A stretch of DNA of 64,000 bases. It comes from Pelomyxa schiedti. Taxonomy: Eukaryota > Protista > Evosea. Shown in pieces: positions 13,825 to 54,966 of this stretch; within the stretch, counting starts at the first letter, position 1, and each line of letters starts with the position of its first letter. The translations under genes and the position numbers were made by a program. The notes under the pieces are model-generated. The model worked only from the letters and a program-made list of their open reading frames with translations. It was not told the DNA's origin and ran no database searches. The stretch covers positions 1-64,000 of the forward strand of contig JAHLWZ010000824.1 in NCBI GenBank assembly GCA_020536535.1, in the 5' to 3' direction.

Positions 13825-15240
13825 TTAATCGCCAAGGAGAAAGGAGTAACAGCTCGCAATGAAATTCATAGAAGATAGAAGCTTGAAGGTGACAATGTGA
13901 AAACCAGATTCCTCGTCAGTAACGTGAATTGCGTTGAGTCCCTCGTTCACCTGGAACAGCAGGCCACCCTCAGTGAAGGTACTACTGCACAGGCAATAGG
14001 AGGAGAGGTACTTTGTTGTCTTGAGGGGGTGTTCTATGTCTTTGAAATCCCACACGTCATAACAGGCACTGTGTCCACCAAGTTCAAAAGAACAGAAGCG
14101 CGACTCGTCCAGCTGTGCTAGTTCGATGTTATTATCCAGAAAATGTTGCTTGCCGGTCCCCTCCTCTATTGCAGCAAAGGTATCACCAAGGCACAGAACC
14201 AGTGAATGAGCTCCGCCTTGTCTGGTCAATCTGCCAACAAATCTGATAAGAGGCCCTGTTTGTACTGTTTGGGGAACAGTTGAGCTCACCACGACCAATT
14301 CACTTGACGAAAAGGTTTGTGCAAGGTCGACCAAAACAAGTAAATTTGTTTTCAAAGGGTCGTCAGAGAATAGAAGTAAGACACAGTCTTCACAGTGGCT
14401 CCCAAACTGAGGACGGCACTGCTTCCATCTCCTCCCTTTGATAACATCAAGTGAAACAACGATCCTGTTGTGGCTTGGTGGGGCCGTTGAAGTCACTGGG
14501 TTCCTTGGGATTTTGACAATTACAATTTCCCTTGGAACCCAGCTACACCACACCAACCATTTGCCATTGAAACGAGGCCACCTTGGCAGTTCCATATTCG
14601 ACGCCCACAGCGATATCTTGGCGCCCGTCACAATGTCCTGCAAGACCGGGATCCACTTCAGCCTCCTACCGAAAGTCTTGAGCCTCATGCACACCAAGTA
14701 GCTGTGACTTGCGCCAAGAACGGACAGGGGCCTAATCGGCGGGATGTGGAGCACGTCGACCCACCACTTCATATCGTGCGTCACTGTCAGCAGCACAAGT
14801 GACACCCCAAACGTGATGACCGTGGTGCCGCGACTACCATCCAGGGTGACACAGAAGAACCTCACCCTGTTCATCAGCCAGTCCCACAGCAGCCTCAACA
14901 CAAGGGTGCCGCCGCCGATCCCGTAATACTCTCTGGACAGCTGCAGCAGCGGGCATCTGGCACCGCAGCGAGGGTGTGTGCCCGCCGCCAGCCCCATCGC
15001 CTGGCACTTTGCTGTGACTCCCTTGTCTGTTGCCTTCCCTGGTGTTTCTAAGGCAAGGGCAAGTGTATCCGAGGCGCGAGGCAACTTGGCGACCACAAGT
15101 CTGCCCAGGCGCCGCCTCCTCGCCGTCGCCTGTGGGTTGCACGCAACAGTGGGAGCCGTGACCGTTGTTGGTGCGTGGGAGTCGACGTTTTGACCACCGG
15201 TATCGCCGTACCCCCTTTTGTGTTGGAGCTGGTCTGTCAT
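13825..15240 (-). CDS. Single-exon uncharacterised protein, 'HPRCG-motif' family member 1
   Basis: 471-aa uninterrupted ORF with QAMGLAAGTHPRCGARCP, NGKW, VDLAQTFSSSEL, VWDF...PL, GLLF and IHVTDEESG. Confidence 0.8.
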   Translation of the reverse strand: MTDQLQHKRGYGDTGGQNVDSHAPTTVTAPTVACNPQATARRRRLGRLVVAKLPRASDTLALALETPGKATDKGVTAKCQAMGLAAGTHPRCGARCPLLQLSREYYGIGGGTLVLRLLWDWLMNRVRFFCVTLDGSRGTTVITFGVSLVLLTVTHDMKWWVDVLHIPPIRPLSVLGASHSYLVCMRLKTFGRRLKWIPVLQDIVTGAKISLWASNMELPRWPRFNGKWLVWCSWVPREIVIVKIPRNPVTSTAPPSHNRIVVSLDVIKGRRWKQCRPQFGSHCEDCVLLLFSDDPLKTNLLVLVDLAQTFSSSELVVVSSTVPQTVQTGPLIRFVGRLTRQGGAHSLVLCLGDTFAAIEEGTGKQHFLDNNIELAQLDESRFCSFELGGHSACYDVWDFKDIEHPLKTTKYLSSYCLCSSTFTEGGLLFQVNEGLNAIHVTDEESGFHIVTFKLLSSMNFIASCYSFLLGD

Positions 15241-15267
15241 TACGCCGGACGGGGTGTAACGCGAATT

Positions 15268-15319
15268 GGCTGAATATCAACAGACACCGTTGCGGTCTGT
15301 TGATTATTTTATTCCGCCC
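15268..15319. repeat. Internally deleted variant of inverted-repeat family A
   Basis: GGCTGAATATCAACAGAC-accgttgc-GGTCTGTTGATTATTTTATTCCGCCC, in the short divergent gap between 15240(-) and ~15350(+). Confidence 0.7.
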
Positions 15320-15349
15320 ATTAGAGATGATGCTGCAACGAAAAGCGAA

Positions 15350-16653
15350 ATGCCGTCCCAACAACAAAATAAACCCCAGGTCGTTGCAGATCTATTGTTG
15401 GGTTTGATTCGTCAACATAGATATCTATGCAGGACACATACAGAGACCGGTAACAAACGTGGTAGGAACGATGACGAGCAAATCAGCAGCGGAGACAATA
15501 CTAGTAGTAACTGCGAATCATGCTCAAAGAAACCGCGTGTGGACTTACCTTGTGTTCGCAAACATGACGCGATGGCCCAGGCAACTGTATCGCTTGCCTT
15601 TGCTTACTTGGACAGTTTGGCATTCAAAGCGGAGCAGGTATTTTGAATACTGTTGGAAATAATTCATAACTTAGGTTCACTGTCAAAGAACACGAAGGTG
15701 GTTACAAGCGAAATCGAGCAATTGACGGAACTGGAAGGCTATGTGACAAAAAAGATCAAAGACAAGATAGCCGAATTGAAGGAGCAAGCACAGAGAAATC
15801 TAACGGTAGTTCCAATTTAGGCTTTGTTTGTAACACTCAGCTTTTTCTCAGAACTCACTCGAGAAGCTCCTAACCCTCAACGGCACTCAGTTTTCTGAAA
15901 AACAGACAGTAATTCATTCTAACTCCTTTGATGCCCTCATAACTCACTTCCTTGAAGCTCTTGTACCCTAGAGGCTGGATCCTGGAGGAGTTAGATCGTA
16001 CCTTGGAAAACACACTCAGTAACATTTCCATTGTCTCTGGTACGAGTGCCAAGCAAACCCTTTCTCAATTAACACAAATAGGAACACGCATTTTAGACCT
16101 TCCCCACCATATTTTGGTGCATATTGTGGAGTACTTACCCCCCAAATCTGTTCTGGCTGCTCGCTTGGTGTGCCTTGACTTCTGGACTGCTGTATGTGAA
16201 GGTTTGGGTTCCTTTAATGTCACTGAACAATTTAACCGTTCTTAAACAGCCACAAGAACTGAATGTACATTGGAAACGTTGGTTGAGAGATATGGGGAAG
16301 TTTGGCAGCTCATGGATTGCTGCACTGTTAGTACCCCCACGGCAGACTTCTGGTTCCAGGTTACAGTGCAGTCAACCGGCTTCACTGTTAAGTATTGGGC
16401 TGAGGAAATGAAGCTCTATGCACAAGCCAAGCACTTCGCAATAGAGATAACGGACTCACGTCACAAGAAGACTCTGGCACAACAGGAGTTTGTGGCACCA
16501 GCCTCTGAGCAGGCGGAAACAGGCCACGGCACAGTAGATATGATACCCCTGAGTCTGGAGTCCTGGTGCAGCAAAGTACCCAGCAAGTTCCATCTCAGAA
16601 TCGATGTTACAGACCACTTTGCTGAAAACTCCCGCCTCAGACCCCTTGATTGA
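15350..16653 (+). CDS. F-box protein, tandem copy 1
   Basis: F-box ILDLPHHILVHIVEYLPPKSVLAARLVCLDFWTAV. It has an N-terminal coiled region and a C-terminal beta-rich domain ending FHLRIDVTDHFAENSRLRPLD. Confidence 0.75.
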
Positions 16654-16860
16654 TTGATCGGTGGGAAAACACAAAACGGGAAAAACGAAAGATTGGAAGA
16701 AAGAACATTCTGGCAAAAACTGAAAACTGTCACCAGTTCCCAGCAAACTTACAAGTTGTAGTGAAGTGACCTGAATTTTGGATAGATTCTAATCACGCCG
16801 GAGTGTCACAAAAGTGGTATATTTTTTTGGCATTTAGTCATTCTGTAAGCAGCGAGATCT

Positions 16861-17878
16861 ATGCGGGCCTCCAGAGCCAACACAGATCCTTTGCATACAA
16901 ACCAAGCTGGAAACGACAATGAACAAGACAGCAGCCGCATAGTCACTACTACTAACAACAATCCCCCACGATGGCTCCTGAACAGGCCCGTGAGCCGTGC
17001 CCCAAGAAACCACGTGAGGAAGTATCCTTCATTCACTGCCATGATGACGTGGCCAAGTCAACTGTATCACGTGCCTTTGCTTACTTGGATAAACTTGCCT
17101 TTGAGGCCGAAACGGTTAATGGTCAACCTTGTAATTAAATCTAACATGACTTCTCACTTTTCAGAGCACAAGGAGGTTACTAGCGAAATTGAGGAGTTAC
17201 AGGAACTTAAATCACACGTGAATGAAGCTATAGACGTGAAGATAGCTGAATTGAAAAGTAAAGCACAAGGAAATCTCCAGGTATCATCAGAACTGGTTTT
17301 GTTTGGTTAACTCATGAGAAATAGAACTCACTTGAGAAACTCAGGAACCTCAATGGTGTGTTTTCTGAAAAGCAAACAGTAATTCAACTTTATCGTATTT
17401 TTTGCACTGAAGGGATTTTATCCGAAGCTCTTTTACCATAAAGACTGGATACTTAATCAGCTACATCAAGCCTTGAAAAACACCCTCAGTCACATTTTCA
17501 TTGTCAGTGGTATGTGCTCAACAACCCTTTTGAAGTTAACAGAAAATAGGAACTCACATTTTGTCCCTTCCCCACCTCGTTTTGGTGCAAATTGTTGGGT
17601 ATTTACCCCGAGAGTCAATATTGGCTGTCCGCTCCGTGTGCTTTGACTTTTGGAAGGCTGTCTGTGAAGGTTTTTACCCTATTAATTAACAACTGTGACT
17701 GTTAACTTGGTCACAAACAGCGACAAGACATGCCGTTACATTGTGTACTTCTGTTGCAAGGCAGGACAACTCTTGGCTGCTCATTGATTACAACGGTGCA
17801 TGTACTCCAACAGCTGACTTTGTATTCAGTATTAGTGCGGAAACCAAAAATGTTGCGACCCTAAAAAAAGTGCACTGA
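16861..17878 (+). pseudogene. F-box protein, tandem copy 2, 5' part (interrupted)
   Basis: Colinear with copy 1, with equivalent introns (KKPR..RAFAYLDKLAFEAE; ILSLPHLVLVQIVGYLPRESILAVRSVCFDFWKAV; TPTADF). It ends abruptly at ...KK GTG CAC TGA. Confidence 0.75.
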
Positions 17879-17995
17879 CGATTTGTTCCCTGGTGGCGAC
17901 CCCGAACACGACACATTGGACGGAGTAATGGACGCACTCCACAGACAACGAATTGACTACTACTTGAGATACGCCAATGTACGAGAACAATGACA

Positions 17996-19840: not shown

Positions 19841-19936
19841 CAACACCCCAAATCCTCTTCCACCAAAGCTTTCTTCTGAAAATTAGAATTCCACAAGGGG
19901 TAATCTCTTCTCTGGTGAAGTAAGACCATACATTTT

Positions 19937-20490: not shown

Positions 20491-20671
20491 TAACTGATTT
20501 CGCAGAATGGTACAATCTACAGCGTGGTGTCAAAAACCAAGAAATTGGAGTTATTTGACCCCCAAACTTGAGCAACCCAGGTACGATGCAAAGGAGTTGT
20601 ATGTAGTCAATATTATTTTTTGCACCTATTTTTTTAAAAAAAACCGTTTAATCGTCCTTACTGTCCTGTAG

Positions 20672-26779: not shown

Positions 26780-28474
26780 TTATTTGATCAAACTGGAGTG
26801 TATACATATGGCACAGTGATGTATGTTTCCACAATCAGCAGCGTGAGTGTAACCAAACACCAAGGAATCTGACAAGAGATACTTCGACAAGTTGCTTGAG
26901 GGAATCAGCAGGTCCCAGTTCGGGTTGTTGTTGCTCATTTTCCTTATGAACAACATACCAGCCGGCCCTTTCATGTCTTCTCCCTGGTTTATACGCAACA
27001 ACGCCTGTGCAATTGTGAGATTGGGAATAAACTATGATACGAATGTGGCATACCTTTGCAGTCCATCCAGGTTCCCACTTCACTAGGCCATCTCCGGCAT
27101 AGTCTCAAATGGAAAACGCCCTTTGGTGAGTGTAAGAAAATTGGGAAAAGTAAAGTTTAGAAATACCAGGCCAGTGTTAATCGAGGCAGCACACAGACCA
27201 TCTGACGAATCACAGAATCTAATAAGCATTCCTTTTGTAGGTTTTTCAAGCAGAAGTGCTTCAGCCTCCTTTCTCCCAAGGAAACCAAAGTTCGATCCTC
27301 TTTTGCGTTCGTAAGATTGGAAAGAAAATAAAATGAACACATACAATGAAGCCAACTCATCAATGGCCTGTTGCCCAATCTGGAATTCTTCAATCGGTGA
27401 AGAGAGTAAGGCACAAATTTGCATCCAACGTTTTTGTGAGATACAATCTCCATAATCACAAGCTGAGAATCATTAATAAACTACAACATTATTGGTTGAT
27501 TAGTACCATTGAGGTTCCCCCAGGAAGATAGATCAGCGTGGAATACTCCTTTTACATTCTGGATGACACTGATCCACGCTATTTTGGACGCGGTTCCCTG
27601 TGACATAGCAGCCCAAAAAGTTTCCGGTGTGAAGAAGAGGCCTGAAAGGATCGGCGAGGCAGCAGGAATGGCGACAGGGCACGGCGATTGCATCTTTGGA
27701 ACCCCTTTGATAAGGACAGTGAGATAACGAATAAATACGTGCTGGAGTGATACTATAAACGATGCCAAAGTGAGCAAAGCAGTGTTGAACAGCGGACCAC
27801 TCATACAACATGAAGGAGTACCACTCCTTTTCCGGTGTTTGGGTAAGAGAGAGTAGCACCAGCCTGATGTATAGTGGTTGTTCTCCACCTAAAAAATATT
27901 TAAGTTCCTTGTGTGCTATAATAAAATTAATAAAAATTTTCCGCAATAATCCCAAATAATAAACAAATTACATTCATTAATGCACAAATAAATTCTTGAA
28001 TGGGATATGTAACATACTTGCGATATTTGTTCTTGGTTTTGCAACAAGGTATTGGCCGCCGCAGAGGGCAACTCTACCGGCTGTCCCATAATCCGCAGAT
28101 GCCTCGGCGCTCTCCCTGAATATGCCCCACAGAGCTGGATCGATTGACGGTGCCCAGTACGTGTCACAGGGCATTCCTCGCTCGCCATTGTACCTCACGG
28201 TCTCGAATAGAGCTCCCAGGCAAGCTTCCACGCCCATAATCACCTCTTCACTGTAGTTGTAGATGTAGTTAAACACCACGGTATCGTCACCCTGAGGATG
28301 ATTTCCATTTTGTTGAGCCTGGCTGTGGTGCTGTTGATCGCCAATTGTGGGAAGCGTTGGTGTCGTAGACATCGGCATTTTAAACGATGAGACCAGAGAC
28401 ATCGTGAGGGTGTTGGTCAGGTGCTGCCGTGCTGCAGTGGCAGTTATGGGATAACCCATTTGTGCTGTTGTCAT
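26780..28474 (-). CDS. SH2-domain-containing protein
   Basis: NFGFLGRKEAEALLLEKPTKGMLIRFCDSSDGLCAA is a STAT-type SH2 core. Multi-exon; the N-terminal domain is unidentified. Confidence 0.7.
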
Positions 28475-28564: not shown

Positions 28565-29860
28565 ATGCTTTCGGTTGTAAAGTTCATTGATGCAGGGCAT
28601 CAATTTGTGGCGCTTGGGTGTGGCGTACTGCCTCGGTGTGGCACGTCCAGCGCGGCCAACGCGCTGTCGGCCACACTTCTGCGCCACATCGGCAGCCTGT
28701 GGGTCGTCAGCGAGTCCCGCATCGTGACGTTCTGCGCCCACCGCGGGCCCTGCGACCCCGTCGACCGCGCCCTGCACACGTTTGTGTTCTCCACCTCGCC
28801 GACGCTGGGGCTGGTCCGCGGCCTGCTCGACGTCCACTCCTCGCCGGAGCACTTTGGGTGCGCCTGGCTGCCGTCCCACGGTCCCCACAGCGACCGCTTG
28901 CACTCTCTCATACTCAAGAGCGTGAACCCAGAGGGCGGGGTTCGGGTATCCACTAGCTTAGAGCCCTGTATTGTTCTTCGCCGGCTAAACTTTAAGGGGC
29001 CCCTGGCAGGCACCGTGGTGGACTACTACAACTATGCAGGGGGCTCCACGGTGCTCCACGCCCGGTTAAATGACAAGTGGGCCGTGGTCATCGGCGCCAC
29101 GGGAAACAGCCGGGACGGCTACCGAGACCTGGCCCTGTGCATCCACATCTGGCCCGCACCGGACTTCCTCCAGGGCCACGCCGTCGAGGTCCCCCTGGTT
29201 GGAGACGGCGCCGACGACTGCCCAGTGGCCGCGGACTTCACCTGCTCCCTCTCCAGCGAGTGCGGGACCGCCGCCACCGACGAGTTCACCGTCGTGTTCT
29301 CGTTCTGGCTCATCGTCACCATAGACCTCGCCGCGTCCTACAGCACCGGCGCCCTCGTGACCACGCGCTCCAAGGAAGGACACTACGGCACGCCTGCGCG
29401 GTGCCACCTGATCGACGGGCGGTTCCTCCACACCCCCAGGGGGCCCGCCGTCGTCCTGTGCAGCAAGTTCGCCTCGCCCGACGCCCGGTGCTACATCATG
29501 TACCTCGCCACGGGGCGCCTGGACCGGGCTGCGGCATTCCCCTTTGGCCAAGTGGAAGGCTGCACTGTGGCTGCATTCCGCGACGACACCGGCGTCTGTG
29601 TTGTGTACGACGCCCGCAGGACTCTCCCTGGGCCGGTGTGCGTGCACAAGCGCGGGGAAGCTGGGTCCTCGGTGAAGGTGGTGCGGCCCGGGATGGTTGT
29701 CCACGTGCACAATCACATCGAGCTCTGCAAGTACCCTTTCATGCCGCTCACAGTCACAACCTTGGAGTTTGTGGAGGCTACTTCGGGCATGCATGTCCTC
29801 ACACTGTCTTCTGATGAGGGAAAGACCCCTCTGGAGGTCACCTCCTATTGCTTGTTTTGA
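28565..29860 (+). CDS. Single-exon uncharacterised protein, 'HPRCG-motif' family member 2
   Basis: HQFVALGCGVLPRCGTSSAANALSATLLRHIG, FSTSPTLGLV, NDKW, IDLAASYSTGAL and LEFVEATSGMHVLTL. Likely ATG at 28565. Confidence 0.8.
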   Translation: MLSVVKFIDAGHQFVALGCGVLPRCGTSSAANALSATLLRHIGSLWVVSESRIVTFCAHRGPCDPVDRALHTFVFSTSPTLGLVRGLLDVHSSPEHFGCAWLPSHGPHSDRLHSLILKSVNPEGGVRVSTSLEPCIVLRRLNFKGPLAGTVVDYYNYAGGSTVLHARLNDKWAVVIGATGNSRDGYRDLALCIHIWPAPDFLQGHAVEVPLVGDGADDCPVAADFTCSLSSECGTAATDEFTVVFSFWLIVTIDLAASYSTGALVTTRSKEGHYGTPARCHLIDGRFLHTPRGPAVVLCSKFASPDARCYIMYLATGRLDRAAAFPFGQVEGCTVAAFRDDTGVCVVYDARRTLPGPVCVHKRGEAGSSVKVVRPGMVVHVHNHIELCKYPFMPLTVTTLEFVEATSGMHVLTLSSDEGKTPLEVTSYCLF

Positions 29861-29992: not shown

Positions 29993-31807
29993 ATGTACTC
30001 GGCCGACGACGAGAGCGTAGCGAGCGACACAGAGGTGCAGCTCAGCGCTCCCGAGGACGGGGAGGAGTCACCAGGGGAGGAGGACCCGTGCGACGACGGT
30101 CGCTCCCCCACAACACAGTCGCTGTCGATTGGCGCCGTGGGGGTCGCGGGCCTGCCTCTGCGAACGGGGCACGTGAGGAGCCACAGGAACCCCTACTGCG
30201 TCGTGGAGCTACGCACCAGGTCCGTCTCTGACGACCCGGCCCTGCGGGGCCGCAACTTGAAGTCCACCTCGATAAAGGTAATTATGGGTTGCTCCGGTGT
30301 GCTTGTGGGGGGTTGGAGTATGTTGCCACTGTTTGGAAATTAAATTTGGCCATCAAACCATGCAATACGAAATTCAAGACGCCAAAAGTCAAGAATCGGT
30401 TTTCAGCCCAGTGGGATAATATTGGAACCCTAGTTTGTAAGTGGGATCTACATCCAAAGGTAATTTTCTTCATTCAGTGGGTTTTTCTACCCACCAACTG
30501 ACTTTTATAAGGATATGATTGTTGTGCGAGTTTATGACGAGCATGTTCTCGCTAATATAGAATTGATCACAATGGCGGAGTTCCCGCTATTCTTGTTCAT
30601 TACGGACGACCACACACAGCCCAAAACTGTTACATTACCGCTTCATATCTCCCCATCACTGGATTCCTCCATCACAGTACAAGCAACACTTCCGCATCCT
30701 TATCCACCGAAGTTTTCTTTGCTTCTGAGGCAACGCCAAGTATTTGCTTTTACCTGTGCACTACATGCCAGGGTTGGTGCAGCAAGTGTCGCTCGTATCC
30801 TGCCGTCACAGATAGTCTCATACATATGCACACTCATCAGAGGGGAGAGTCCACACACACTTCAAGGGGTACTTTCTCGTACCTTGGATTACCTGTCAAT
30901 TGTGCATCACTATTCACCTCCACAATGGATAGAAAGTAGCTATATGCGGTTGTTCAAGTATCTCAAAGAGTCCTCTGGAAACATGTGCACAAGTCAAGAA
31001 GGGCAAGCCACGGTCAGTGCCAACGTTGTTATAGAAACCAACGCCTTTTCTGTCAGACTGGAAGTGCCTTGCACTCCTACCGTAGTGCACCATACCCAAC
31101 TGAAGAAGTTGGTGGAAACTGCAAAGAATACTGTCATGGAGCCCCATTGCTTTGAGACACTTTCTTTTGGTGGAACGTCCTATCCAACACACCTCTGCAC
31201 TCAACCGAGTATCTCCTACACTATTTCCACCCTTCATCCCTCCATGATGCTAAGTTTTGGAGCGTTCAGTCATGTAATTGCCTCTCTGAAAGCAGTTCTT
31301 CCCCTTACAGATGGAATGAGTGGTGTGGGTATACATGCTGTCCATGGAACCAAAGTATTTGCTGCCTGCTTTAAAGTAGGAACAGAAAATCTGAATGAAC
31401 TGCTTCATATCCTACACAGAGGCCCTGCAGTTCCAGACCGCAAAGAGAAGTCTCCACCTTTCTTCCCTTCGTCAATATCCAAGCAACACCGGGTAGTCAG
31501 CGTTTCTGCATTTTCAGGCAAGCACACCTTCGAATTCTTCATTGTGTCATTCCCCCTACGTGATTCAGACTGGTCTCCACCATTTCCACAAAGAACAGCC
31601 CCAGCCCCTGAGAGTATATTGAAAATATTAAGCAATGTGGTGGAAGGAGGACAGTTCCTCACATTGTCTCATCTACACACATCAGAGGCAGGTCTGGTGA
31701 TGAATGGTCGACTGCCTTCTGCTGTTGAAGTGGAGATTAATAACACATATGGAAGTGCTTGCTTTACTCCAAGGTGGGTATGGCAATTCCCCAATTTGTG
31801 TGGGTAA
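29993..31807 (+). CDS. C2-domain protein carrying an internal HxRxG motif and an unknown C-terminal domain
   Basis: C2-like NPYCVVEL, FKTPKVKNRFSAQW and IVVRVYDEHVL. Motif RQVFAFTCALHARVGAASVARILPSQIVSYIC. Confidence 0.65.
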
Positions 31808-33158: not shown

Positions 33159-34892
33159 ATGTCGACGGTTGGGCCTGGGACTGGTAGCCCTGCTCACTGC
33201 GGGTGGGTCACTGTGCTGCAGATTCGTCCTTCGGGCGACAACGCCTCCGCCGCGGCGCTGCTCAGCAAGTCCCTCGAGGAGCAGGCACGCACCAAAGGGG
33301 GCCTGAGCCCCCAGTTCGCCGTCTTCCCGGAGGAGTTTGTCGACGGCTCCCCGCTGCTGCGCCTGACCCTCCCCGCCGACTCCCCCGGGTGCCTGGGCAG
33401 CCCCGCGGACCGCCGCTGGTGGGCCCCCTTCGCCGACTCGGCGAGATCCTCGCGCTGCTGCCTCGTCCTTGGGTCCGTTGCAGAGCAAGTCCAGTCTGCC
33501 TCCACTGCCACTGCCACTGGTGCCTCTACGACTGTGAGCGAGAGCGAGGGCGCGAGTGCGAGCGGGAGCGGGAGTTGCGGGGGGGAACACAATGACGGGA
33601 CAGCGCTGTGCTACAACACCAGCGTGGTGCTTGGCGACGACGGGGAGCCTGTGATGAGGTACAGGAAGAGACACCTGGTCGCCGGGGAGGAGATGATGAC
33701 GAGGACTCCTGGCAACAGCCTTGGCCTGGCTTGGGCAAAGGGCCGGCCGATATCTGTAATGATATGCCACGACCTGGACAACCCGGAGCTCAGAAACGAG
33801 TGCTTTACCGCTGTTGCTAATGTATGTTTGTGCGCCAACAGCTAAAGTCGACTTCAACTAATTGGATTAATGGGTGTTGGACATGGAGTTACAAAGTACT
33901 AACTAAGTCTGATAAATTAGTTACCACCACCTGGTTCCATGGAAGAACCTAGAGGAAGACCGCTGGTATTCAACCCTAATGCTGTGGGCCCAGCATCAAT
34001 GCAAGCCCAAACGCTTCAAATGATTGAAAACGGTAGCTGGGTAACATCACTTGATGCCCTCAGACTTAGACTTGAACGAGAAGTACGTGCAAGTGGCGTT
34101 TCCATTGTGCGAGTCGGCACACCATTTGTACCCCCACCATATGAGAGCGAATCTCCAACTGTAGGAATTGGCTCCAGGTTGCTTATTGGTTGCATAAATG
34201 AGACGTATTAACCTTTTGCAATAGTATTATGATAACACCCAATGGAACTTATTTCCCGCCAACTTGCAAGCAAGCCGTTTTTGACTTTCCTCTTGATGCA
34301 TCAGCTGACTTATCAGCAATATACTCCAGTTTTCCTCTTCCCCCTCGCTCTCGGGAGCTAGATGAATCTGGTCTCAGGTTCACTGTTAAGTATGAGTCGA
34401 TTACAAAACCAAGCCATAATCTTACCCGTTTCCCTAAGATACACACGTTGGACCCCACAGCAGAGAGCAATCCTAGAATCAGTTGGAACTCCGCAATCTC
34501 CACTCCTTCACATAACCGACAAACACATAGCCCTAATTCTCAGCCCTGATCCCTCACACAACTGCATATGGGACACACCAACGCTCATAGCTTCCAAAGC
34601 ACCCCCGCCCCCTCAGACACTCCCAACACCTGACCCCAGTGCACTACCCCCAAATTGCACATGCCCATGTGGATGCACTACCATACCACAGTTAACCAAT
34701 GACAACTGGAGAGTGTGTGCTGACCCCATGTGGTGGGAATTTGGCCAACCACTGAGAGCAGCTGCAACAAATTCCAGAGAGCTTGTTGTGCTATTGGGCA
34801 ATTGTGATGTTGCAGTAGTCACGTTCACTGCCAACAACACCCCACTCAAAATATCAGACCTTCTGAAATTAGGTGTCAGCAAAAACACCTGA
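33159..34892 (+). CDS. Carbon-nitrogen hydrolase (nitrilase superfamily) with a C-terminal extension
   Basis: Catalytic triad contexts VFPEE (Glu), YRKRHL (Lys) and VMICHDL (Cys), plus YNTSVVL. Downstream exons continue to the stop at 34892. Confidence 0.8.
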
Positions 34893-34975
34893 TTTTGTTC
34901 CAGGAATGGTATTTGACTCTCTTGTTCTGAACATAATAAGCTATTTCATGGAATTCCACTATTTTTACCCGCACG

Positions 34976-36454
34976 ATGTGTGGCCTTGCGTCGTCAACAA
35001 CAACAGTACCAGCAACCAACGCCAGCGGCCCAGTAGCAGTGACCACACCGGTGCGTGTGTGGGCGCACCAACAAATGGCAGCCTTAGCCGCCGGGACACA
35101 CCCGCGCTGCGGCGCCCGCAGCCCCGCGCGGTGCCTCGGCCCGCCCTGCCTCGCGGCCCTGTGCCGCTCGTGGCGCCGCGGCCCCGCTGTGGCCGTGGTG
35201 GCTCTGGGCGTGGACGCCAGGGCGCTGGCGGCGGTGGGGGGCTCGCTCTGGGCCGCCGAGGCAGACGGCGCGGGCGCGGGCGCCGTAGTCCCAACCGACC
35301 TGCTGTGCGTCGCCGTGTGCGTCCCTCTGCTCGCCGTCATTAGCGTGAAGAAGCTGGACCACAAGAAGGCCATTTGCAGTGGTGTGAAGAGTACTGATGG
35401 ATGTGCCGCAAGGACAGAGAGGGGCTGCCAGAGGTGGCAGCTGGTTGGTCCGCATGGAGAATGTGTGGTGAAGAGGCTCAATTCCCGTGGTGAATCAAGA
35501 GGCACCTTCTTCTTTATTCCTGCTCCTCATTGTAAGGAAGAATCCCCTTTCGCATTGCGTGAAGGGGGAGGAGGGGACGTTGGCGGGGATGAGGGTCCCA
35601 TGTTTTTATTTGAAGAGAGCCACGGCGTAGCCTGTGATGTGTGGTGCCACACAGGAAACACTAGGTGGTGGGCCTGGTGTGATGGTCGGGCTCTGTATTT
35701 GGTTGATATCGCGAGCATGCGGAATGGTGATGATTCTGAGGTAAATGAAATGAACCAACAAGCATTGGATGTTACTGGGGGAGAGCAGGAAGGTTGTTGG
35801 GCAGTAAGCTTGCCACTAGTTCCACATCCCTTGGGTGTTGACGACTCTGTTGAACATCTCTTTGTCAATGAGGTGAATTCCAATGAACTGGTCATGGTGT
35901 CTATTTCTTTGGACACACTGTTCCTTGTTTTTGATGTCAAGTGCACTCTCAAAACAGGGAGCCTGAAACTGGTGAGTGCAACGACCTGTACTGTTACCCG
36001 TGACACAGCGGGCGCCGTCTATGTGTCAGGATTCATGTGCAGGAAGCAGTCTGGCCAGAGGGTGTTCCTTGTTCAATTCCACAGCCCAACACTTGAAGTG
36101 GAACAGTGTGTTGTAATTCAGCTGAATGAGAAGTCAGGTGCAACGAAGGTAATATCCACTGGTGTTGTGAAGCTATGCCAGTTGACAGGGTCACTGTTTT
36201 GCACATGTTCATCACTACGGCACAACTTTCACTATCAAATTTGGGACTGCAACCACACAGCCAAGCCTCTGCAGGAAATAGGCCCACTGGAAGGCTGCCT
36301 GAGTGTTTCCGGCACTTGTGGCCTCTTGTTTTTGTGCTACAGTTACCAAATCAAGGTAATTGATGCACTATCTGGTGTTTCACTTCTCACTGTCGATGTT
36401 CCTTCAACTCCGTCAACCTTCCCCGTCGCCCTCAGACAAGTCCTGGGTTCGTAG
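34976..36454 (+). CDS. Single-exon uncharacterised protein, 'HPRCG-motif' family member 3
   Basis: 492-aa ORF with HQQMAALAAGTHPRCGARSPARCL, NTRW, FDVKCTLKTGSL, YQIWDCNHTAKPL, GLLF and IKVIDALSGVSLLTV. Confidence 0.82.
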   Translation: MCGLASSTTTVPATNASGPVAVTTPVRVWAHQQMAALAAGTHPRCGARSPARCLGPPCLAALCRSWRRGPAVAVVALGVDARALAAVGGSLWAAEADGAGAGAVVPTDLLCVAVCVPLLAVISVKKLDHKKAICSGVKSTDGCAARTERGCQRWQLVGPHGECVVKRLNSRGESRGTFFFIPAPHCKEESPFALREGGGGDVGGDEGPMFLFEESHGVACDVWCHTGNTRWWAWCDGRALYLVDIASMRNGDDSEVNEMNQQALDVTGGEQEGCWAVSLPLVPHPLGVDDSVEHLFVNEVNSNELVMVSISLDTLFLVFDVKCTLKTGSLKLVSATTCTVTRDTAGAVYVSGFMCRKQSGQRVFLVQFHSPTLEVEQCVVIQLNEKSGATKVISTGVVKLCQLTGSLFCTCSSLRHNFHYQIWDCNHTAKPLQEIGPLEGCLSVSGTCGLLFLCYSYQIKVIDALSGVSLLTVDVPSTPSTFPVALRQVLGS

Positions 36455-36512
36455 TTTTTCAGATAAAGAAAAACCCATAAACTGTAAAAGATGTGTCACT
36501 GCCCTTTTACTA

Positions 36513-39500
36513 TCAGTCAGTTTTAGGTGGGTCACATGGTTCTGATTGTTCTTTGGTGTCGGTGACGGGATGTTGTTCTACAGGGTTTGTTTGTGGGTTT
36601 AGTTCGATTCCCTCTGTGTCAGGTGCATTATCTTCACTTGGAGGCGGTGGAGTGGTGTTGGGTTGTGGTTCTTCTGGGTTGTGCTCTTTGAAAGGTGAAG
36701 GAATTGGTGGTAGTGTCAGTGTAGTGGTAATTTGTAGGGAACATGTGGGGGCGGAAATTGTGGGCTCTGGGGAAGAAGTTGGGGAGGTGGTAGTGGCACT
36801 CAGCGGGGATGGTGATGGTGCTGTGGGAGTTGCGGCCGGTGTAGTGGACTGGGAAGAGGGAGGCGTATTTACATTTCCTTTGGGAGCAGTTGCCGTGACG
36901 GGAATTGGGGTGGAGAGCTTCTTGGGGATGGAGCACAGTGTTACCACTCGGCGAAACGGGTTCTCGCTTCCCGCAACGTTTAGAACGGAAACCATGGTAA
37001 CGGCACTTCCTTTGTGCAGAACTTTGCCAATCTAATGGTGATAAAATGAGTGGAGTGAAACATGAGTGGATGATACCTTGCGCCTGCTGAGTGCAAAGAC
37101 AACTGGTACTTTGTGGGACCTAGCATCTGCAATGATCTTGGACACAAATTGATGAAGTGCAGTCGCTTGTTCCATATTTGGCGCCACAATTACACATTTT
37201 GAAAGCCCTCGTTCTACAGAGCGTCCAACCTTGGGTTATTTGTTCATTCTGGGGGCAAAAAAAAAGGGATTACTTCATGCATTCCGACTACATAACGTTT
37301 CTTCATTTGAACCTGTGCCGATTAGTGGATTTCAATAAAGTGAGTTGGGAAGAAGCCTTCATTTTTGACTGAGTGGTAACAAGTCTTTCTTGGCTATGCA
37401 CCAAAGTCGTCAGGAACTTTGACACAGCATTGTCTAGTGCGGGGGTCAAATCATGAAGGCATTGAGAGCTGGACTCACAGTGAGAAAAGGTAGTATATGA
37501 AGACCACTGACTTGACAAGGTCCGTAGTTACTGGAGCTCTAGGAGCTTTTAAAAGCTGGCGCATATACTCAGGAGTCCAAATCTGTGATGGTGGTCTGCA
37601 GGATTTGAGGAGTTAAAGTGGGAGGAAGTCATTACGGTTTGGCCGGCACAACATGCCGCTGCATGTGTTTCATCAAAAACTTCTTCTTTCCAAAGGGCCT
37701 ATCACGAGTACAACCATCCCATTTGCATGCAAAAGGGGACTTTATCCTGAAAGGTTTAGACACAGTAGTTTTGAGAAGAGGTACTTGTCGAGATAAACAT
37801 GAGTTTTCTTGATGTGCCGTAGCATAAAGATTTTCCTCGGAAAAACTAAATTACACCCTTGCCATAAGCAAACACGGGCAATACTCTGTTGTGCTGCTAA
37901 AAAAACAATGAGGAAAAAAAAGAAATAATCTCGGTCTGCAACCTTTGACTGCAGTGGTCACTATTGAGTGTGCTGCAGATATTTGATCAGTCTCTTTGAG
38001 AGTTTGCTTGTATCTTGGAAAGTGTGGGAATTTGTGAGTACAAGGAAAATAGGTACTTGTTAAGCCTTTCCACAAGAACGCGTTTTTTTAATCCAGATAT
38101 TTCTTTTGGATTTGTTTTAGGAGGCGGCTTCCTTTTGTGTACCTTCTCTTTAAGGAGTTAGCTTGAAAACAAGGGGAAATCACACTTGTAATTTTTTTGG
38201 GTTTTATTTTCTTCGCCGCGGCTTTCTCAATAACTTCTTTTCTCATTTTTGATAAATTATTCTCGAGAATTGCAGCTATAGTTGTTTGCTAAAATAAAGT
38301 GAGGTACAATCCACAAGAATGAATGCTTACGGTTGGTTTTGGCTTGCGCGAAACAGGTTGCAAAGGCGGCCCTGTTGTCTTTATCTTTTTCTGTCTCCGC
38401 TTTTTTTTATCCAGAACCGGTTTGGCTGTAATCTTTGTAAGTTGGAGTGCTTTAGAGCCAATCATAGCTGTGGAAATTTGTTGAGGTGAAGCCTAGATCT
38501 GATTAATGTTGTGCCTGGTTTTTGGAAAACTAGGTTACCATACTGGAGTTGGGTGAAGTTTTCAAACCGTTAGGCTTTTCATTGCGTAAAACGGCAGCTG
38601 TAGTGCCCCAAGCGGACAGTTGCGTTGGAGAGCTCGATGCTGAAAACTGTGAAGTTGGGTGACCCAATTGCTGTGTCACTGGTGCCGTTTGCAAGTTACT
38701 TGGTGCAAGTGGAATTGGTGACGTCTGAGTGTTTGGCTGACCTGAGAACGGGTGTGATGACGCCCAGACAGTGCCACTGAACTGAGGATCCCGTTGTCTC
38801 ATAGAGCTGGTTGTGTAAACGCCACCAATTCTTGAAGGGTTCTGAGAGTATGGGTTCAAGCGAGGTTGTGCCATCTGCGAATCAGGAAACCCTCTACCCC
38901 TGCCAAGAGTATCCACGCGAGAATGGTGTGTAGTATTACTGCGCTCTGCATTCCTTGTGCTATAGTTGGTTCCCTCCTGTTGCTGTACATTATAGGTTGG
39001 TGCAGTTGCAAAATTGTTTTGGGAGCTGGGTTCCCCTTGGTATCTCCTAAATCCGTCGCCACGCCCACCCCGGAAATTCCCACCCCCACCTCTCCCATAA
39101 TTACTAGCCCAATCCACGTTCAACCGCCTGGGCGCTCCCCTCTGCGGCGACTGTGATTGTGTCGGTGGGTGAGTACCACAAGAAGCCGAGTGCGTGGGCG
39201 TGGGCGATACGTACGACGACGACGGGGGCGGAGGCGGGGGCGAGGTGGGTGTGGACGTGGACGTGGACGCGGAGGCGGAGGCGGCCGACGACGACGATGA
39301 CGACGACGGCAGCGGGGAGCGCGGGGGGTCGGTGCTCCTCCTGGCTCCCAGGATGGTCACGCTCACGGGCTTGCTTAGCACACTGCCCAGCTTGGGTGCT
39401 GCTGCCTGCACCTGCGGTTGATGCTGCTGCTGCTGCTTGGGCTTGGCATTGCTCGGCCGACCGCGGCCGCCACCTTTCTTTGCTTGCGGAGGAGGGGCGC

Positions 39501-39786
39501 CGGGGCTGCTGGGGGAAGTGGACGGTGATGTCTGCGGGGGCGGGGCACTGGGCTGCAGGGAGGCCTTACTAGAGGGAGGGGCCTGGTGCCGCTGCGGCTG
39601 TGGTTGTGGCGCCGACGCGGGGTGCTGCGGGGGAGTCTGTTGTTGCGGCTGTCTCCTTGTGATTATCAACTTTAGAGGTGGTTGCGTTGTGTTGTTACTC
39701 GTTGACGCCATCTCGGCGCCCGAATGTTTTTTTTTTTCTGAAAAGGTGAACAATAAAAAGCCTGGAAGAGGGATCATGTGCAGCAC
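36513..39786 (-). CDS. Large multi-exon protein with a Gln/Pro-rich N-terminus and a C2H2 zinc finger
   Basis: FACKWDGCTRDRPFGKKKFLMKHMQRH (~37650-37740), a Cys-rich exon near 37120-37200, and low-complexity termini. The start may be the Met of MASTSNN (~39710). Confidence 0.55.
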
Positions 39787-45679: not shown

Positions 45680-45804
45680 CGACGACGTTTCGGTTTTCTT
45701 TGTAAATCTGCAAAACTCTGATGAATTCGGCCTTCGAAGAAGCTTCAAGTTTCAGATAAAAAAGATACACAGACAGCACCATCGTGGTCGTCGGTTTTTT
45801 TGGC

Positions 45805-46430: not shown

Positions 46431-46463
46431 AGCAGCCTGACTATAAGATAAATGTTGTTTTAT

Positions 46464-48171: not shown

Positions 48172-48260
48172 TTGTTTTTTTTTTCTCTCGCGGAAGAAAA
48201 AAAACGAAAATTCCTCTCAGACTCTGTTCCTCTTCTTTGCCGGACACGGCGTCTTTGCTC

Positions 48261-50471: not shown

Positions 50472-50676
50472 GTCAAATCACCCCTATGTATTTATCTGTA
50501 AGTCAACGAGAAGGAAGGAAGTTTTCTCAACAAGTTGTTAGAGCACTCGCACCAAAACCCACCAGGGTTCTCTTAAAGAGGTTGTCAGGGGCCTCAATCA
50601 ATATATATATATATATCAATCAAGATCCGAGTTCCACGAATACGTTGTTAAACAAAGGTTAAAAAAAGTCGTTGAC

Positions 50677-52614
50677 ATGTCAGTTATGAAAGTGGTGTGG
50701 GTGTTGGCACTCGTGGGGTTTGTGTTGGGTGACAGTGGGTATTTTATGAGCAAGCAGGGCGATTCGTGCGCCCACACTTGTCACACTCTTGGTCTCAATT
50801 GCAATCCTGTGCGTGGTTTTTTTTTTTTTTTTTTTTTGAAACTCAAAATCATGAAAACAATATCCCCCCGCGGGGGACTTCTTCCTTGGCATTTATATGT
50901 AATGCAAAATGGTGCCTCTCGAATTCTCACTGACAATGATGCCATTCTCTGGCACAGCATATTGTGACAAACAACTCCACTGCATTGTTTCAGCAGCTTG
51001 GTGTATCGTGCAAGGCAGACAGCAGGCCTTGGTGGGCACACGATCAGCCCAATTACGTTGTGGAGCCAACAGATCCTAACTATCAAGACTGCCTTGGTAT
51101 TTCTCAAAGCTCTCACTTTTGTTGCTTGGCATTTTTCCCCCAACTTAAATGGCGAATTAGGTTACACTGCTGTTCCTGGTGGTGTACTATGCGGTGCCTC
51201 TCACCCCGCTGTGCAGCGCCTGTGCCGTTGTGATGACCCTTCACCATCTGAGCAAACTTTTGGCTTTGGTCTTTCAAGTGGCTCTGTAACGTAGCTTATT
51301 CTCTCTCTGTTGTTGCCAACAACTTACTCATCCCCAAGGACAACCGAGACAATTGTTTTTCAGCACTGGCTTGCGGAAGGGGATACAGTAACCAAGAAAC
51401 CTGTATCGATCATTTTGTCTGACTTATTGTAGGGCGCTATGACTCATTTTTGGATGACAATTCCAAATGGGTATGAGAACGGACTACTTGTGCGCTACTA
51501 TGTCGATGGGGAGCTTGATGCTTCCATAGAGTTTGAACCTCCTTTGGCTTGTGGTGTAGGTTTTGGAGATTCGGTGTGTATTCCATTCTGCATGACATTA
51601 TTGTGACTCTGATTTGTTAAGCAAGCTCCTTGGGGCATTCATTGGTTTGGAAAGGGTGCAAACTCAGGAAGTTGGTTCAATAACTTCATTATTCCTTTCA
51701 AAAGCAGCATTGTTGTTACTGTGCAGCACACTGTGGCCGATTATGTGCTTTTTTTTTCGGTTTTTGCCTCAGGCACTTAATTCCTTTTTTAGGGTGGATT
51801 CTACATGATTGTACGTGGTGCTACAAGTATTTCTTTTTTTTATCTTAGCAATGGCCACTTTGACCCCTTTCTCAGATGTCCCAATTCGCATTGGAAATTT
51901 GGTCCTCCCTTCCAGTTCCAAGTTGACTCTGCACAAATTCTCAGGTTTAGACCACTACTGCCACTCGGATGGTAACGTCAATTTACAGCTGATGTGGCTC
52001 CTGTGACCTATGTTGACTTTGTGAACATTGCCTCAGGCTCTGGTCTCCTATTCCTTCATACGATACAAGTTGACTCAGCTAACCTCAATTTTCTTGAGGG
52101 GTGCTACCACATGTACACTGGTGAGCAAGAGTTTCCAGGTATGCATCTCTCTGCCCCTACTGCTATTCTTTCTGAAACCAGACAGGTACCGTACTCTCCA
52201 CTGGCACTGAGGACTACTACGGTACGCATCTTAGAATTTTAGCAAGCCCGACCGATTCCATAACTAACTCCACCCAGATAGCGGTTGGTACTTTGATGCG
52301 GGCGAATTCCACATGCCTGTGTCTGGCTACACGCATTATAGCAACAATGACAACCGCATACAATGGTCCGCTTACAGGTTAGGAACCCCGAATCAAATCA
52401 AATCATTTTCTAATCCAAGAGTTCAATTTCTACCTTGAACAGGCTCCATGAGATGGATCCACTGCAATTCGACGATGGGATGAGGTTCTCCTGGCGCAAC
52501 GGAGATACTGTTGACGCTGCTGGCATCAAATGCATGATGGAAGAAGGTGGAACCATCATCGGAACACCTTCCACGTCTTCTATTGAAGCGTATACGTGGG
52601 TTTACACCTGGTAA
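50677..52614 (+). CDS. Secreted DUF2961 (GH172-like) glycoside hydrolase with a Cys-rich N-terminal module
   Basis: Signal peptide, then AMTHFWMT, VRYYVDGE..ASIEF, FNNFIIPFKSSIVVT, FLEGC, TGTEDYYDSGWYF and SAYRLHEMDPLQFDDG. Confidence 0.85.
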
Positions 52615-52968
52615 GATGAATAAACATTTCTAAACTTAGTCTTTCCTCTTTCGTCGAACAAGGTGCCAGTTCTCTCTGCTGTGGTAACCGTCGCGATCCG
52701 TTTGTTGAGCGGCAACAAACAGTGACGAGTTTGGCTGTCACACGGCCGAATGATGGGAAAAACGCCACCAGCACTGACAATTCGAAACTGAAGGGTGGAC
52801 AACAGTCAAGCAATTGTTCCAACACCAAACCAACAAATCCCAAAACACCAATCAAAAGGTACAACCAACACAGAGCAAAGAAATAATTCGTTGCTTGTCA
52901 TTAAACACTATTCTGTGCCAGTAAAACCAAGGTGGATAGAGGTAGGCATAAGAGTACTCTGTGTGGCG

Positions 52969-53126
52969 GCTGTGGTTCTTCTGCTGGCTGGTGGGTTGCC
53001 TATTAATCGCGGTTAGAACTACATCATAATGAGAATGCATATCTTGGATTCTCACGTGGGTCTGGTCTTTCTCTGCTGTGGTTCTTCTGCTGGCTGGTGG
53101 GTTGCCTATTAATCGTGGTTAGAACT
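52969..53126 (+). repeat. 52-bp direct repeat, two copies, 54-bp spacer
   Basis: GCTGTGGTTCTTCTGCTGGCTGGTGGGTTGCCTATTAATCG(C/T)GGTTAGAACT at 52969-53020 and 53075-53126. Confidence 0.9.
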
Positions 53127-53463
53127 GCGTACTCAAAAGTTGGAAAACGAGCTGGGTGTGTGGTACAGAAAAACAACAATAAAAAGAGGTGTGCCTGTGT
53201 GCTGAAACAACAATAAAAACCTAACACCTGTTACGGGTGTGTAGGGTGTGTATTTGTAGATCTCGGTTATTGGGCATAACTTGGTACGTGTTCCTAGTTT
53301 TTTTTATGTTTTGACTGCTGTGTGGGTTTTTTGTAATTGGGAAGATCCCAGAGATCCCAGATCCCAGAGAAAATGGTGACGGTACATAATGGTGACGGTA
53401 CTCTGTGGCGTTGCTCGACTATGCAATGGGCTGACCAACATACCCTAGGAGGGTGTATGAGGT

Positions 53464-54966
53464 TCAAATCTGGCCTCGAATTTCTTTTTTTGTTTGATTT
53501 GTTCTTTTCGGAATGCCGGAATTGAGTTGTTTATGTGGTCTTGACAGTTTTAAGTTGGTTCTTGTCTCAACTACTTCAGGAAAAAATTCTACACAATTCC
53601 GTGGGTCTTTGGCGGGTCGATCAAGTGGCTGCGTGGTGTTTTCTGGTAGTGTTAGTGGCTGGTTGTGTGGTTGCAATTGATGATGGTGAGGGTGATGACT
53701 CGTGATTTGGAAGAGGGAACCCATCAAGAAATCAGAACACAACTTGAAGCCGCCGAGTTCTCCCTTTTTGGGGTCTACAAACCAAGTCTCCCACTCTTCC
53801 CTCTCCTGCCTGTCACCTTCATCATCATAGTATCCAACGGTTTTGGCTGCATCAATCACGAAAAATCCATTGCAAAAGAAGGAGACCTTCATCGGAGACG
53901 TTGATGCTTGGAGGGGCAGAGTGTATGCTATTACAAGCGTCTGGCTTGAGTATGATTTGACTGTGTCTATTACCATCAAGTCCACTGTGGTCTCATCAAA
54001 CGCTGAAACATATAAAATAATCTGATTTTGGTCTGGAGCATTGAAAAATGGACTCCACACTTGGTGGGTATGTGCAGAGTAGGGGAGGCTGATAAGACTG
54101 AGGTGTGCATCAGCACTTCTAGGCTGCAAGAACATCACAAATGGCTCATTGTAATCAGTTGCAACAGACAGAAAGCCCGCAAACCACTCCTTATTTACAC
54201 ACCAACCATAGCATCGGAACCGCATATTAGACACAGCTTCTACTGGCCATATCTTCCTCTCTTGTGATACAGCGTGGCTCTGCCACAATTGCCACTCTCT
54301 CGCTGTGGTTTTTTCATAGACATAGCTCAGTTCATCTGCCCAGACGCCATCCTGGTGTTGTATTTGTATTGTTGGTGCAGTGATAGTTCCGTTTGTCTGT
54401 GGCGATACTGAAAATGAGACCCATATGTTTTCGTCTGGGTTGCAGAGTAAGGTTGAATTCGTGGACTGCAGCTGGAACTTTACTACTTGTACGTCAATGA
54501 GGTAATCATGCAGTAAACGGATAATGATTGGGGCGTGAGGTGCCAGCCACGAGTGGCGTCCAAGAGATGTCAAGGCCTTTAGTTGGTTCTGCAAAGTGAG
54601 CAATACTTGGGGGTTATTGGCCAAGTCCATATACTCCGGTTCTGCTACTCGATATTTCCCGAACTGGGCATATGGGTCCTGGGATATTTGGTATTCCTTG
54701 TAAGCCTGTTCTGCACCCAGCCTAAGCATGGAGCAATTGTATGCAGCCCATTCTTCAGGGGATTGGGGGTACCGTAGTTGCGGTTCGTCTTGCTGTTGTT
54801 GTTGCTGTTGCTGTTGTTGTTGTTGTTGTGGAGGTGGCGGCGGCGGGGGCGCCGCTTGCTCTGCGTGTGGCTGAGCTTGTGCCTGGGGTTGGGCGTTTGC
54901 ACCCTCATCACCCCCAACATTGGCATCTGTCATATTGCGGTCAGGCTGTGGGTCGGTGCCGTCCAC
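53464..54966 (-). CDS. Single-exon uncharacterised protein, divergent 'HPRCG-motif' family member 4
   Basis: 500-aa ORF with a polyQ N-terminus, QNQLKALTSL..IIRLLHDYL, VSFSVSP, NKEW and VIDTVKSYSSQTL. The HPRCG core and the last blocks are degenerate. Confidence 0.7.
   Translation of the reverse strand: MDGTDPQPDRNMTDANVGGDEGANAQPQAQAQPHAEQAAPPPPPPPQQQQQQQQQQQQQDEPQLRYPQSPEEWAAYNCSMLRLGAEQAYKEYQISQDPYAQFGKYRVAEPEYMDLANNPQVLLTLQNQLKALTSLGRHSWLAPHAPIIIRLLHDYLIDVQVVKFQLQSTNSTLLCNPDENIWVSFSVSPQTNGTITAPTIQIQHQDGVWADELSYVYEKTTAREWQLWQSHAVSQERKIWPVEAVSNMRFRCYGWCVNKEWFAGFLSVATDYNEPFVMFLQPRSADAHLSLISLPYSAHTHQVWSPFFNAPDQNQIILYVSAFDETTVDLMVIDTVKSYSSQTLVIAYTLPLQASTSPMKVSFFCNGFFVIDAAKTVGYYDDEGDRQEREEWETWFVDPKKGELGGFKLCSDFLMGSLFQITSHHPHHHQLQPHNQPLTLPENTTQPLDRPAKDPRNCVEFFPEVVETRTNLKLSRPHKQLNSGIPKRTNQTKKEIRGQI

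Follow-up and report, generated by a model that had tools for sequence, protein, structure and literature searches.

A very large family of intron-free genes in Pelomyxa schiedti joins a conserved HPRCG box to a fast-evolving predicted beta-propeller

The giant amoeba Pelomyxa schiedti carries a very large family of intron-free genes, found so far only in this organism, whose products join a short conserved element, termed here the HPRCG box, to a rapidly diverging domain with the predicted fold of a seven-bladed beta-propeller. Four open reading frames (ORFs) within the stretch of 64,000 nt analysed here (positions 1 to 64,000 of contig JAHLWZ010000824.1, assembly GCA_020536535.1; hereafter the window, located on contig C824 in our genome searches) are probably working genes of this family and are referred to as members 1 to 4 (Table 1). 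We favour the view, with a probability of roughly one half, that the family is a repertoire of adaptors that share one binding partner through the box while each propeller takes a different target.

A preliminary description of the window, made from its letters alone, had proposed that the four ORFs belong to one family with a series of ordered blocks. All four were found at the positions given there, and their kinship is confirmed by a profile hidden Markov model (HMM) of 26 paralogues collected by a whole-genome search, in which member 3 is the sole window sequence. This profile scores every one of the four (E values in Table 1), and apart from them no six-frame ORF of the window matches it at E ≤ 1. 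The blocks are all present in the family consensus, in the form Q..AL...HPRCGA.SPAR, FGVS..LG, N.KW, DV..T...L.V.S, LWDCNNT..PL, GFLF and I.V.EALSG..V.T, and member 3 is the nearest of the window members to this consensus. In pairwise BLASTP, significance is reached for members 1 and 3 only (2e-6, with a second high-scoring segment pair that covers the LAAGTHPRCGAR motif), while members 2 and 4 are marginal. Pfam offers nothing relevant in the six largest ORFs of the window, in 28 family members or in 19 isolated boxes.

The P. schiedti assembly (52.4 Mb) is rich in further copies. With member 3 as a query, at least 94 full-length matches were obtained among 689 first-look candidates, and a 54-column alignment of the N-terminal motif matched 150 of 150 scored candidates, all at E ≤ 2.5e-12, from 1442 first-look candidates. 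Nearly all scored copies are stop-free open frames of 400–520 aa. The codon pattern for HPRCGA occurs at 203 sites in the genome versus one for a reversed control; since the exact HPRCGA string is found in 28% of 151 box domains taken from retrieved proteins, the number of box copies would be about 725. When 1.84 billion cluster representatives were searched exhaustively with HMMER, 576 clusters (50% identity) matched at E ≤ 1e-3; of these, 422 pass a threshold of 1e-10 and 213 one of 1e-30. Taken together, about 550–750 copies are estimated, which is roughly 3% of the gene set when some 20,000 genes are assumed (149,016 introns at 7.43 per gene, according to the searched text of PMC8887013). 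All 20 sampled family matches are P. schiedti proteins, 19 of which are named “hypothetical protein Pelo_*”, and a word-index protein search with the family alignment returned a single Pelomyxa protein. The counts in the genome and in the protein database go far beyond the four window copies and bear out the expectation of a very large family, lineage-specific as far as it has been sampled.

As to how the family spread, HPRCGA sites stand 1.3–4 kb apart in rows of seven on contig C649, five on C594 and three each on C560, C400 and C683, with a further case on C691. Tandem duplication of DNA therefore accounts for much of the expansion, and these arrays speak against retroposition, which had been put forward as a possible vehicle, as the main route of the later spread; no search of the flanks was aimed at poly-A tracts or target-site duplications, marks that would not have outlasted the divergence of the copies. 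The intron-free state of the genes in an intron-rich genome is compatible with a founder gene that was retroposed or intron-free for some other reason. Similarity among paralogous loci is largely limited to the ORFs, the flanks being mostly unrelated, and some copies are truncated or have no box. Among the tandem arrangements, the loci L014 and L020 (on C1021 and C505) are paralogous pairs, in one of which synonymous divergence (dS) is 0.03 in the box versus 0.38 elsewhere in the gene; this contrast suggests gene conversion or a mosaic duplication of the 5′ end.

The genes are constrained yet fast-evolving, that is, they are under purifying but relaxed selection. The ratio of nonsynonymous to synonymous divergence (dN/dS), calculated for pairs of paralogues by the Nei–Gojobori method, is 0.46–0.70 over whole genes in pairs with unsaturated dS (0.32–0.59) and 0.26–0.62 in more distant pairs; values below 1 indicate constraint, and together with an identity of 20–30% between the window members (20–70% among copies generally) they agree with the rapid evolution that the preliminary description had inferred.

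Transcription was examined in the contigs of two single-cell RNA libraries from one study, from which neither strand nor level is readable. A contig of 627 nt is colinear with positions 35857–36482, i.e., with the 3′ third of member 3 and 28 nt past its stop codon. This contig gives partial support for transcription. The neighbouring genes are represented by spliced contigs, with GT..AG introns of 99, 47 and 49 nt in a plus-strand gene at 33706–34951 and introns of 45 and 44 nt in a minus-strand gene at 36724–37318, so that the intron-dense surroundings described earlier are visible in the five introns of the two genes flanking member 3. The upstream transcript ends about 25 nt before the member 3 ATG and has its own stop codon near 34890, and is thus from a separate gene. 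Several intergenic bins have no RNA coverage.

The C-terminal portion of about 350 residues is predicted to fold as a seven-bladed beta-propeller, as the preliminary description had guessed when it spoke of a propeller-like binding domain. An AlphaFold2 model of member 1 from 83 sequences has a mean predicted local distance difference test score (pLDDT) of 80.4 and a predicted template modelling score of 0.79. After a disordered stretch (residues 1–70), it contains three helices (76–86, 96–102 and 109–123; pLDDT 80–90) followed by 27 strands, which with one N-terminal strand make 28, or seven four-stranded blades. Its neighbours in all-against-all structural comparison are seven-bladed propellers (Z 14–16 over 275–320 residues at 5–11% identity; Foldseek E 3e-9), among them prolyl oligopeptidase, the methylamine dehydrogenase heavy chain, IFT-A, PROPPINs and integrin alpha. 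The model of member 3, built from 28 sequences, has a mean pLDDT of 67.6, with the C-terminal half above 90, and gives beta-propellers only in Foldseek. The two modelled window members thus share one predicted fold instead of having unrelated ones.

Propellers of the WD40 type are built of units with the pattern GH...WD. WD40 repeats were detected in 0 of 28 members at E ≤ 0.1, and the family profile finds the WD40 chains of beta-TrCP/FBXW11 in PDB only weakly (E 0.075–0.17). Searches of ESM Atlas with member 3 gave DCAF17, WD40 proteins and the At2g24240 propeller as weak leads, at a score of about 0.9 that shuffled proteins can also reach, and the box alone gave no usable match there. The fold is a generic one and tells nothing about function.

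In the layout proposed for the family, a variable, disordered N-terminal segment precedes the box, and the propeller follows it. The HPRCG box is the best-conserved part of the proteins, with a mean column identity of 43% versus 12–21% over the full length. It comprises about 48 residues with the consensus (a/r)RxQFxALxxSSHPRCGAxSPARx(6-8)LxxxLWxDFV, arranged as a Q-F-x-A-L helix, an H-P-R-C-G-A-x-S-P-A-R loop and helices ending in L-W-x-D-F-V. Within the loop, R, C and G do not vary across an alignment of 19 boxes, and over 83 sequences the residues Q79, R90, C91 and G92 of member 1 are conserved to at least 90%.

Judged by sequence, the HPRCG box is a subtype of a wider HxR(L/C/V)G...LPxxVxxxI module that is absent from Pfam. 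That the box is modular is supported by three independent lines, namely a fifth ORF in the window, other Pelomyxa loci, and metagenomic contigs with ankyrin repeats. The fifth ORF (30515–31807), the fourth-best motif match of the window behind members 1–3, carries QRQVFAFTCALHARVGAASVARILPSQIVSY, in which the box takes the form HARVG (about 30731–30823). No relation to the propeller family is seen in the last 330 residues of this ORF, Pfam has no match for it, and the genome search returned only the ORF itself, so it is a singleton. A genome search with its box segment alone revealed further loci with (L/F)xFxCxxHxR(L/C/A)GxxSxxxxLPxxVxxxIxxLL. In all, nine Pelomyxa loci outside the propeller family, this ORF among them, carry HxR(L/C/V)G...LP..V...I. 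In one (L185), the general box precedes a WD40-like region with weak matches to WD40 and EML propellers; in another (L192), it precedes a beta-rich region of 450 residues, and in others a region of no recognised type; a further locus recovered by the same box search (L186) is an ordinary member of the propeller family. At L191:1162-1686 (in the region C794:41243-41374), a HARLG box is followed in the same frame by a stretch weakly matching the N-terminus of actin (Pfam E 0.0035), and this sequence may represent a fusion of a box with an actin-related protein. When aligned with one another, the nine boxes match the family motif in hhalign with a probability of 97.5% (E 8e-12, 35 columns).

Similar HxRLGxxS motifs adjoin ankyrin repeats in other protists. 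In our searches with the DNA pattern for HPRCGAxSPAR, the metagenomes gave 56 loci, all chance matches in GC-rich bacteria save for one contig with 37% GC (L099). It holds two tandem ankyrin-repeat genes whose products carry ...ILAFCMAQHPRCGAESPARTL... or ...LAAFCCAQNTRCGQNSPARVL... near their ends, some 50 residues ahead of the stop codon. A second contig from the same sample (L123) contains a row of genes, each with a signal-peptide-like start, ankyrin repeats and a tail box, once in the form HPRYG, and the ankyrin proteins of both contigs share a conserved QQQNNS(R/W)CSIQ tail. The contigs (L099:15-1512, Ga0114922_10241852; L123:1-2991, Ga0114922_10071684; metagenome sample 3300011118; 36–37% GC) look prokaryotic in origin because their genes are closely packed and partly overlapping. 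Apart from the ankyrin repeats, Pfam recognises nothing in these proteins, the tail included, and a word-index protein search with the tail region returned only itself and one relative. The nine-box alignment matches the ankyrin tails of L099/L123 with a probability of 97.5% (E 7e-12, 38 columns), a comparison free of ascertainment bias; four ankyrin tails match the family motif with 96.4% (E 1.1e-9), a figure somewhat affected by ascertainment bias, as the pattern had served to find one of the tails. The same HPRCGAxSPAR pattern had 50 loci in bacterial and archaeal genomes and one in viral contigs, all by chance, and a general-box pattern had two matches in viral contigs, both by chance as well.

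No signal peptide or membrane segment was seen in the family proteins, which are thus taken to be cytosolic. According to the adaptor reading, the conserved box would dock all paralogues onto a single partner or complex that they share, and the propeller, which diverges fast, would bind a separate target in each of them. Such a logic is analogous to that of the adaptor and substrate-receptor families with F-box, SOCS-box or DCAF proteins, and the connection to ubiquitin ligases is suggested by this analogy only. Tandem DNA duplication would have been the main source of growth of the repertoire, accompanied by some gene conversion. The preliminary description had spoken of an F-box/SOCS-box-like docking motif; of this, the docking part fares well, as the box is a separable module found on other types of domain, as expected for a docking box, whereas the resemblance to F-box or SOCS box does not hold at the level of sequence.

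Several points weigh against the adaptor reading. Pooled over 16 pairs, dN/dS is 0.34 in the box and 0.45 in the rest of the gene, so that the box is only slightly more constrained. No result here ties the family to ubiquitin ligases. The box is modelled confidently against the propeller and may be partly a structural cap and not a free docking element. The subfamily of member 4 has the helices but not the HPRCG loop. The RNA support amounts to one unspliced contig from a single-cell library, in which carry-over of DNA is possible for an intron-free gene. As for restriction to Pelomyxa, the best 150 of 576 HMMER matches were inspected, and weak relatives beyond Pelomyxa could remain among the others. 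Finally, the link to ankyrin proteins consists of two short contigs from one metagenome sample, the first of which was found by means of a DNA pattern derived from the motif.

The alternative that survives best, though we regard it as rather unlikely, is that the box is an oligomerisation, metal-binding or redox element, or a structural cap, and that the family has some other lineage-specific role, for example in the recognition or handling of prokaryotic endosymbionts or prey or as a cytoskeletal scaffold. The near-invariant H-x-R-C-G, with His and Cys three residues apart, would suit a metal or redox function, as would the invariance of the loop in the aligned boxes, and the position of the helices directly against the first blade (pLDDT 80–90) would suit a cap. 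P. schiedti hosts several endosymbionts (PMC10579272), and the packed, overlapping ankyrin-box genes with their signal-peptide-like starts fit secreted proteins of an intracellular bacterium that copied a host module. However, in the general box the position of Cys can be taken by Leu, Val, Ala or Tyr, which argues against cysteine chemistry as its ancestral function, and a purely structural cap is unexpected at the C-terminus of ankyrin proteins or in front of unrelated domains.

A second alternative, which appears quite improbable, is that the box is a strongly diverged F-box, which would make the family a set of substrate receptors of SCF (Skp1-cullin-F-box) ligases. The F-box, a unit of about 45 aa and three helices, has the pattern LPxEIL...VCKxW. 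A three-helix N-terminal module ahead of a propeller is indeed the architecture of FBXW proteins, Pelomyxa possesses Skp1 genes (split over at least four exons), and the family profile has its weak PDB match to the beta-TrCP WD40 domain (E 0.075). In addition, the sequence S.vr.LP..vi..I..Ll, which makes up the second half of the general box, can be aligned with the start of the F-boxes of Pelomyxa itself, LPxE(I/L)LxxI. This hhalign comparison with 29 canonical Pelomyxa F-box segments, however, gives the general box a probability of 8.6% (E 0.0039) over 18 columns confined to the LPxxVxxxIxxL helix, and it gives the family motif 0.75%. None of 28 members is matched by the F-box models of Pfam (PF00646 and PF12937) at E ≤ 0.1, nor is any of 19 isolated boxes when the threshold is relaxed to E ≤ 10, at which no Pfam entry at all matches the boxes; the Pelomyxa genome contains at least 147 PF12937 matches, none within the propeller family; and the conserved HxRxG loop has no counterpart in F-boxes. 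Co-folding of member 1 (aa 66–470) with a Physarum Skp1 (P0216, standing in for that of Pelomyxa) scored 0.00, which counts neither way.

Two related assignments find no support in the sequence either. A SOCS box starts with a BC box, (S/T/P)LxxxCxxxΦ, followed by a Cul box; its Pfam entry (PF07525) does not match the HPRCG box, whose consensus does not contain the BC-box pattern. DCAF/DWD proteins have WDxR motifs on the bottom face of the propeller and a DDB1-binding H-box helix, but the only conserved W-D of the family continues as C-N-N-T and not as x-R.

The view that the copies are mostly decaying or selfish, as retrogenes or cargo of mobile elements without a cellular function, is very improbable, for although the genes are intron-free in so intron-rich a genome, extremely numerous, fairly high in dN/dS and in part truncated or box-less, nearly all scored copies have kept stop-free frames despite their low identity, every pair has a dN/dS clearly under 1, Pfam detects no domain of a transposase, reverse transcriptase or integrase, similarity between loci is mostly confined to the ORFs, and an RNA contig lies over member 3. 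Spurious ORFs are ruled out by the profile matches, the intact frames and the dN/dS values, and a family of proteins encoded by transposable elements, or of retrogenes, was rejected in view of the absence of such domains, the mostly unrelated flanks and the 20–70% identity of the copies.

Returning to the adaptor reading, it can be placed among known systems. FBXW proteins (beta-TrCP, Cdc4/Fbw7) resemble the Pelomyxa family in having a small N-terminal helical module and then a seven- or eight-bladed propeller, in forming large, fast-evolving families with a conserved box beside a variable binding domain, and in the start of the F-box, which is similar to the LPxxVxxxI helix; they differ in that the Pelomyxa proteins possess neither an F-box nor recognisable WD40 repeats, while the HxR(C/L)G loop is absent from F-boxes. 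The DCAF/DWD receptors of CUL4-DDB1 (DDB2, DCAF17) share the N-terminal helix-loop-helix directly before a seven-bladed propeller; a DCAF17 cluster came up in a language-model search for look-alikes (0.90, within the range of shuffled proteins), and complexes of DDB2 and COP1 stand among the many propeller matches, but the Pelomyxa family has no WDxR motif, and no sequence similarity was detected. ASB proteins with their SOCS box and the ankyrin proteins of poxviruses and Orientia (PRANC/F-box) are comparable to the L099/L123 proteins, which likewise combine a repeat domain with a terminal box, HPR(C/Y)G, though by sequence this tail is neither a SOCS box nor PRANC. From the seven-bladed non-WD40 propellers that are its best structural matches, the Pelomyxa family is set apart by the low identity and by having no catalytic partner domain.

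A bolder combination of these observations is possible, albeit unlikely: the box would be a new autonomous eukaryotic docking domain carried by some 600 fast-evolving propellers that constitute a recognition repertoire, serving, e.g., to sort, tolerate or destroy intracellular prokaryotes, and intracellular bacteria would have copied it onto secreted ankyrin effectors in order to plug into the machinery of the host.

Table 1. Family members, boxes and associated segments in the window
Feature	Position	Strand	Description
Member 1	13825..15240	−	471-aa intron-free ORF; family HMM 5.3e-45
Member 1, predicted layout			aa 1–70 disordered; HPRCG box aa ~76–123; seven-bladed beta-propeller aa ~125–467
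Member 1 HPRCG box	14872..15033	−	Helix, HPRCGA loop, two helices; motif profile 9.3e-16
Member 2	28565..29860	+	Divergent family member; frame open from GTG at 28421; family HMM 4.2e-11
Member 2 box	28571-28720	+	LPRCG replaces HPRCG; motif profile 6.3e-15
Fifth box-bearing ORF	30515..31807	+	Intron-free, 430 aa, between members 2 and 3; motif HMM E 0.0026
Member 3	34976..36454	+	492-aa intron-free ORF; inserts within N-terminal blades; family HMM 4.7e-120
Member 3 box	35039-35194	+	Found by motif profile
Member 4	53464..54966	−	Distant relative; open frame reaches 55287; family HMM 3.6e-8, profile positions 80–270 only
RRM-like segment upstream of member 4	55125..55451	−	tblastn versus L126/L129: 2.8e-15, 2.6e-10

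Member 4 is a distant, probably truncated relative. Its nearest relatives are five loci only (C1406, C180, C238, C5254 and C992; E 8e-88 to 2e-26), after which the main family follows in the same search at E 1e-5 to 1e-3. This subfamily of about six copies retains the Q..AL and LL.D.L helices. Member 4 keeps part of the propeller; the C-terminal blades have no match downstream in the window, in line with the absence of the last three blocks noted in the preliminary description, where the closest paralogues run about 90–130 residues further. Two paralogues of the subfamily (L126 and L129) begin with RRM-like sequence, as read by eye, followed by long linkers rich in Pro/Gln/Arg-Ser, and the RRM-like segment at 55125–55451 probably forms one gene with member 4.

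The GenBank models of the window members depart from the ORFs. The model P0040 corresponds to the member 1 ORF minus a predicted intron of 18 aa, an in-frame GT..AG segment of 54 nt (14506–14559, minus strand); since its removal deletes the family-conserved KW-LVWC block, the intron call is likely an artefact of gene prediction. The model P0062 (KAH3756418.1) is 96% identical to member 2 and is without about 17 aa of the ORF. Among the GenBank models of family proteins (P0002–P0150), many of 800–1800 aa contain two family copies or of one copy joined to kinase, Roc, Sel1, ankyrin or phosphodiesterase domains, and one such joined model is named “protein-ADP-ribose hydrolase” (KAH3761836.1). These are most likely merged neighbouring genes and not true fusions. 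Aside from the family, the window contains at 38530–39786 (minus strand) an open frame of 418 aa that is nearly all Pro/Gln/Ser-rich low complexity and has no Pfam match.

The propeller fold and the logic of a conserved box beside a variable repeat domain are known already; the family, its size and its box are not described in Pfam, in the text of PMC8887013 as searched, or in the literature searched for the motif strings and for Pelomyxa together with propeller. The genes are a clear case of intron-free expansion within a very intron-rich genome, and they are of value for annotation, as neighbouring copies are merged in GenBank models and short in-frame predicted introns were given to two window members. 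One family, listed merely as hypothetical proteins, makes up about 3% of the gene set in a giant amoeba that is free-living and bears endosymbionts. Finding the partner of the box would establish a new docking domain, and possibly also another branch of regulated protein recognition, and it would account for the presence of the same handle on bacterial-looking ankyrin proteins.

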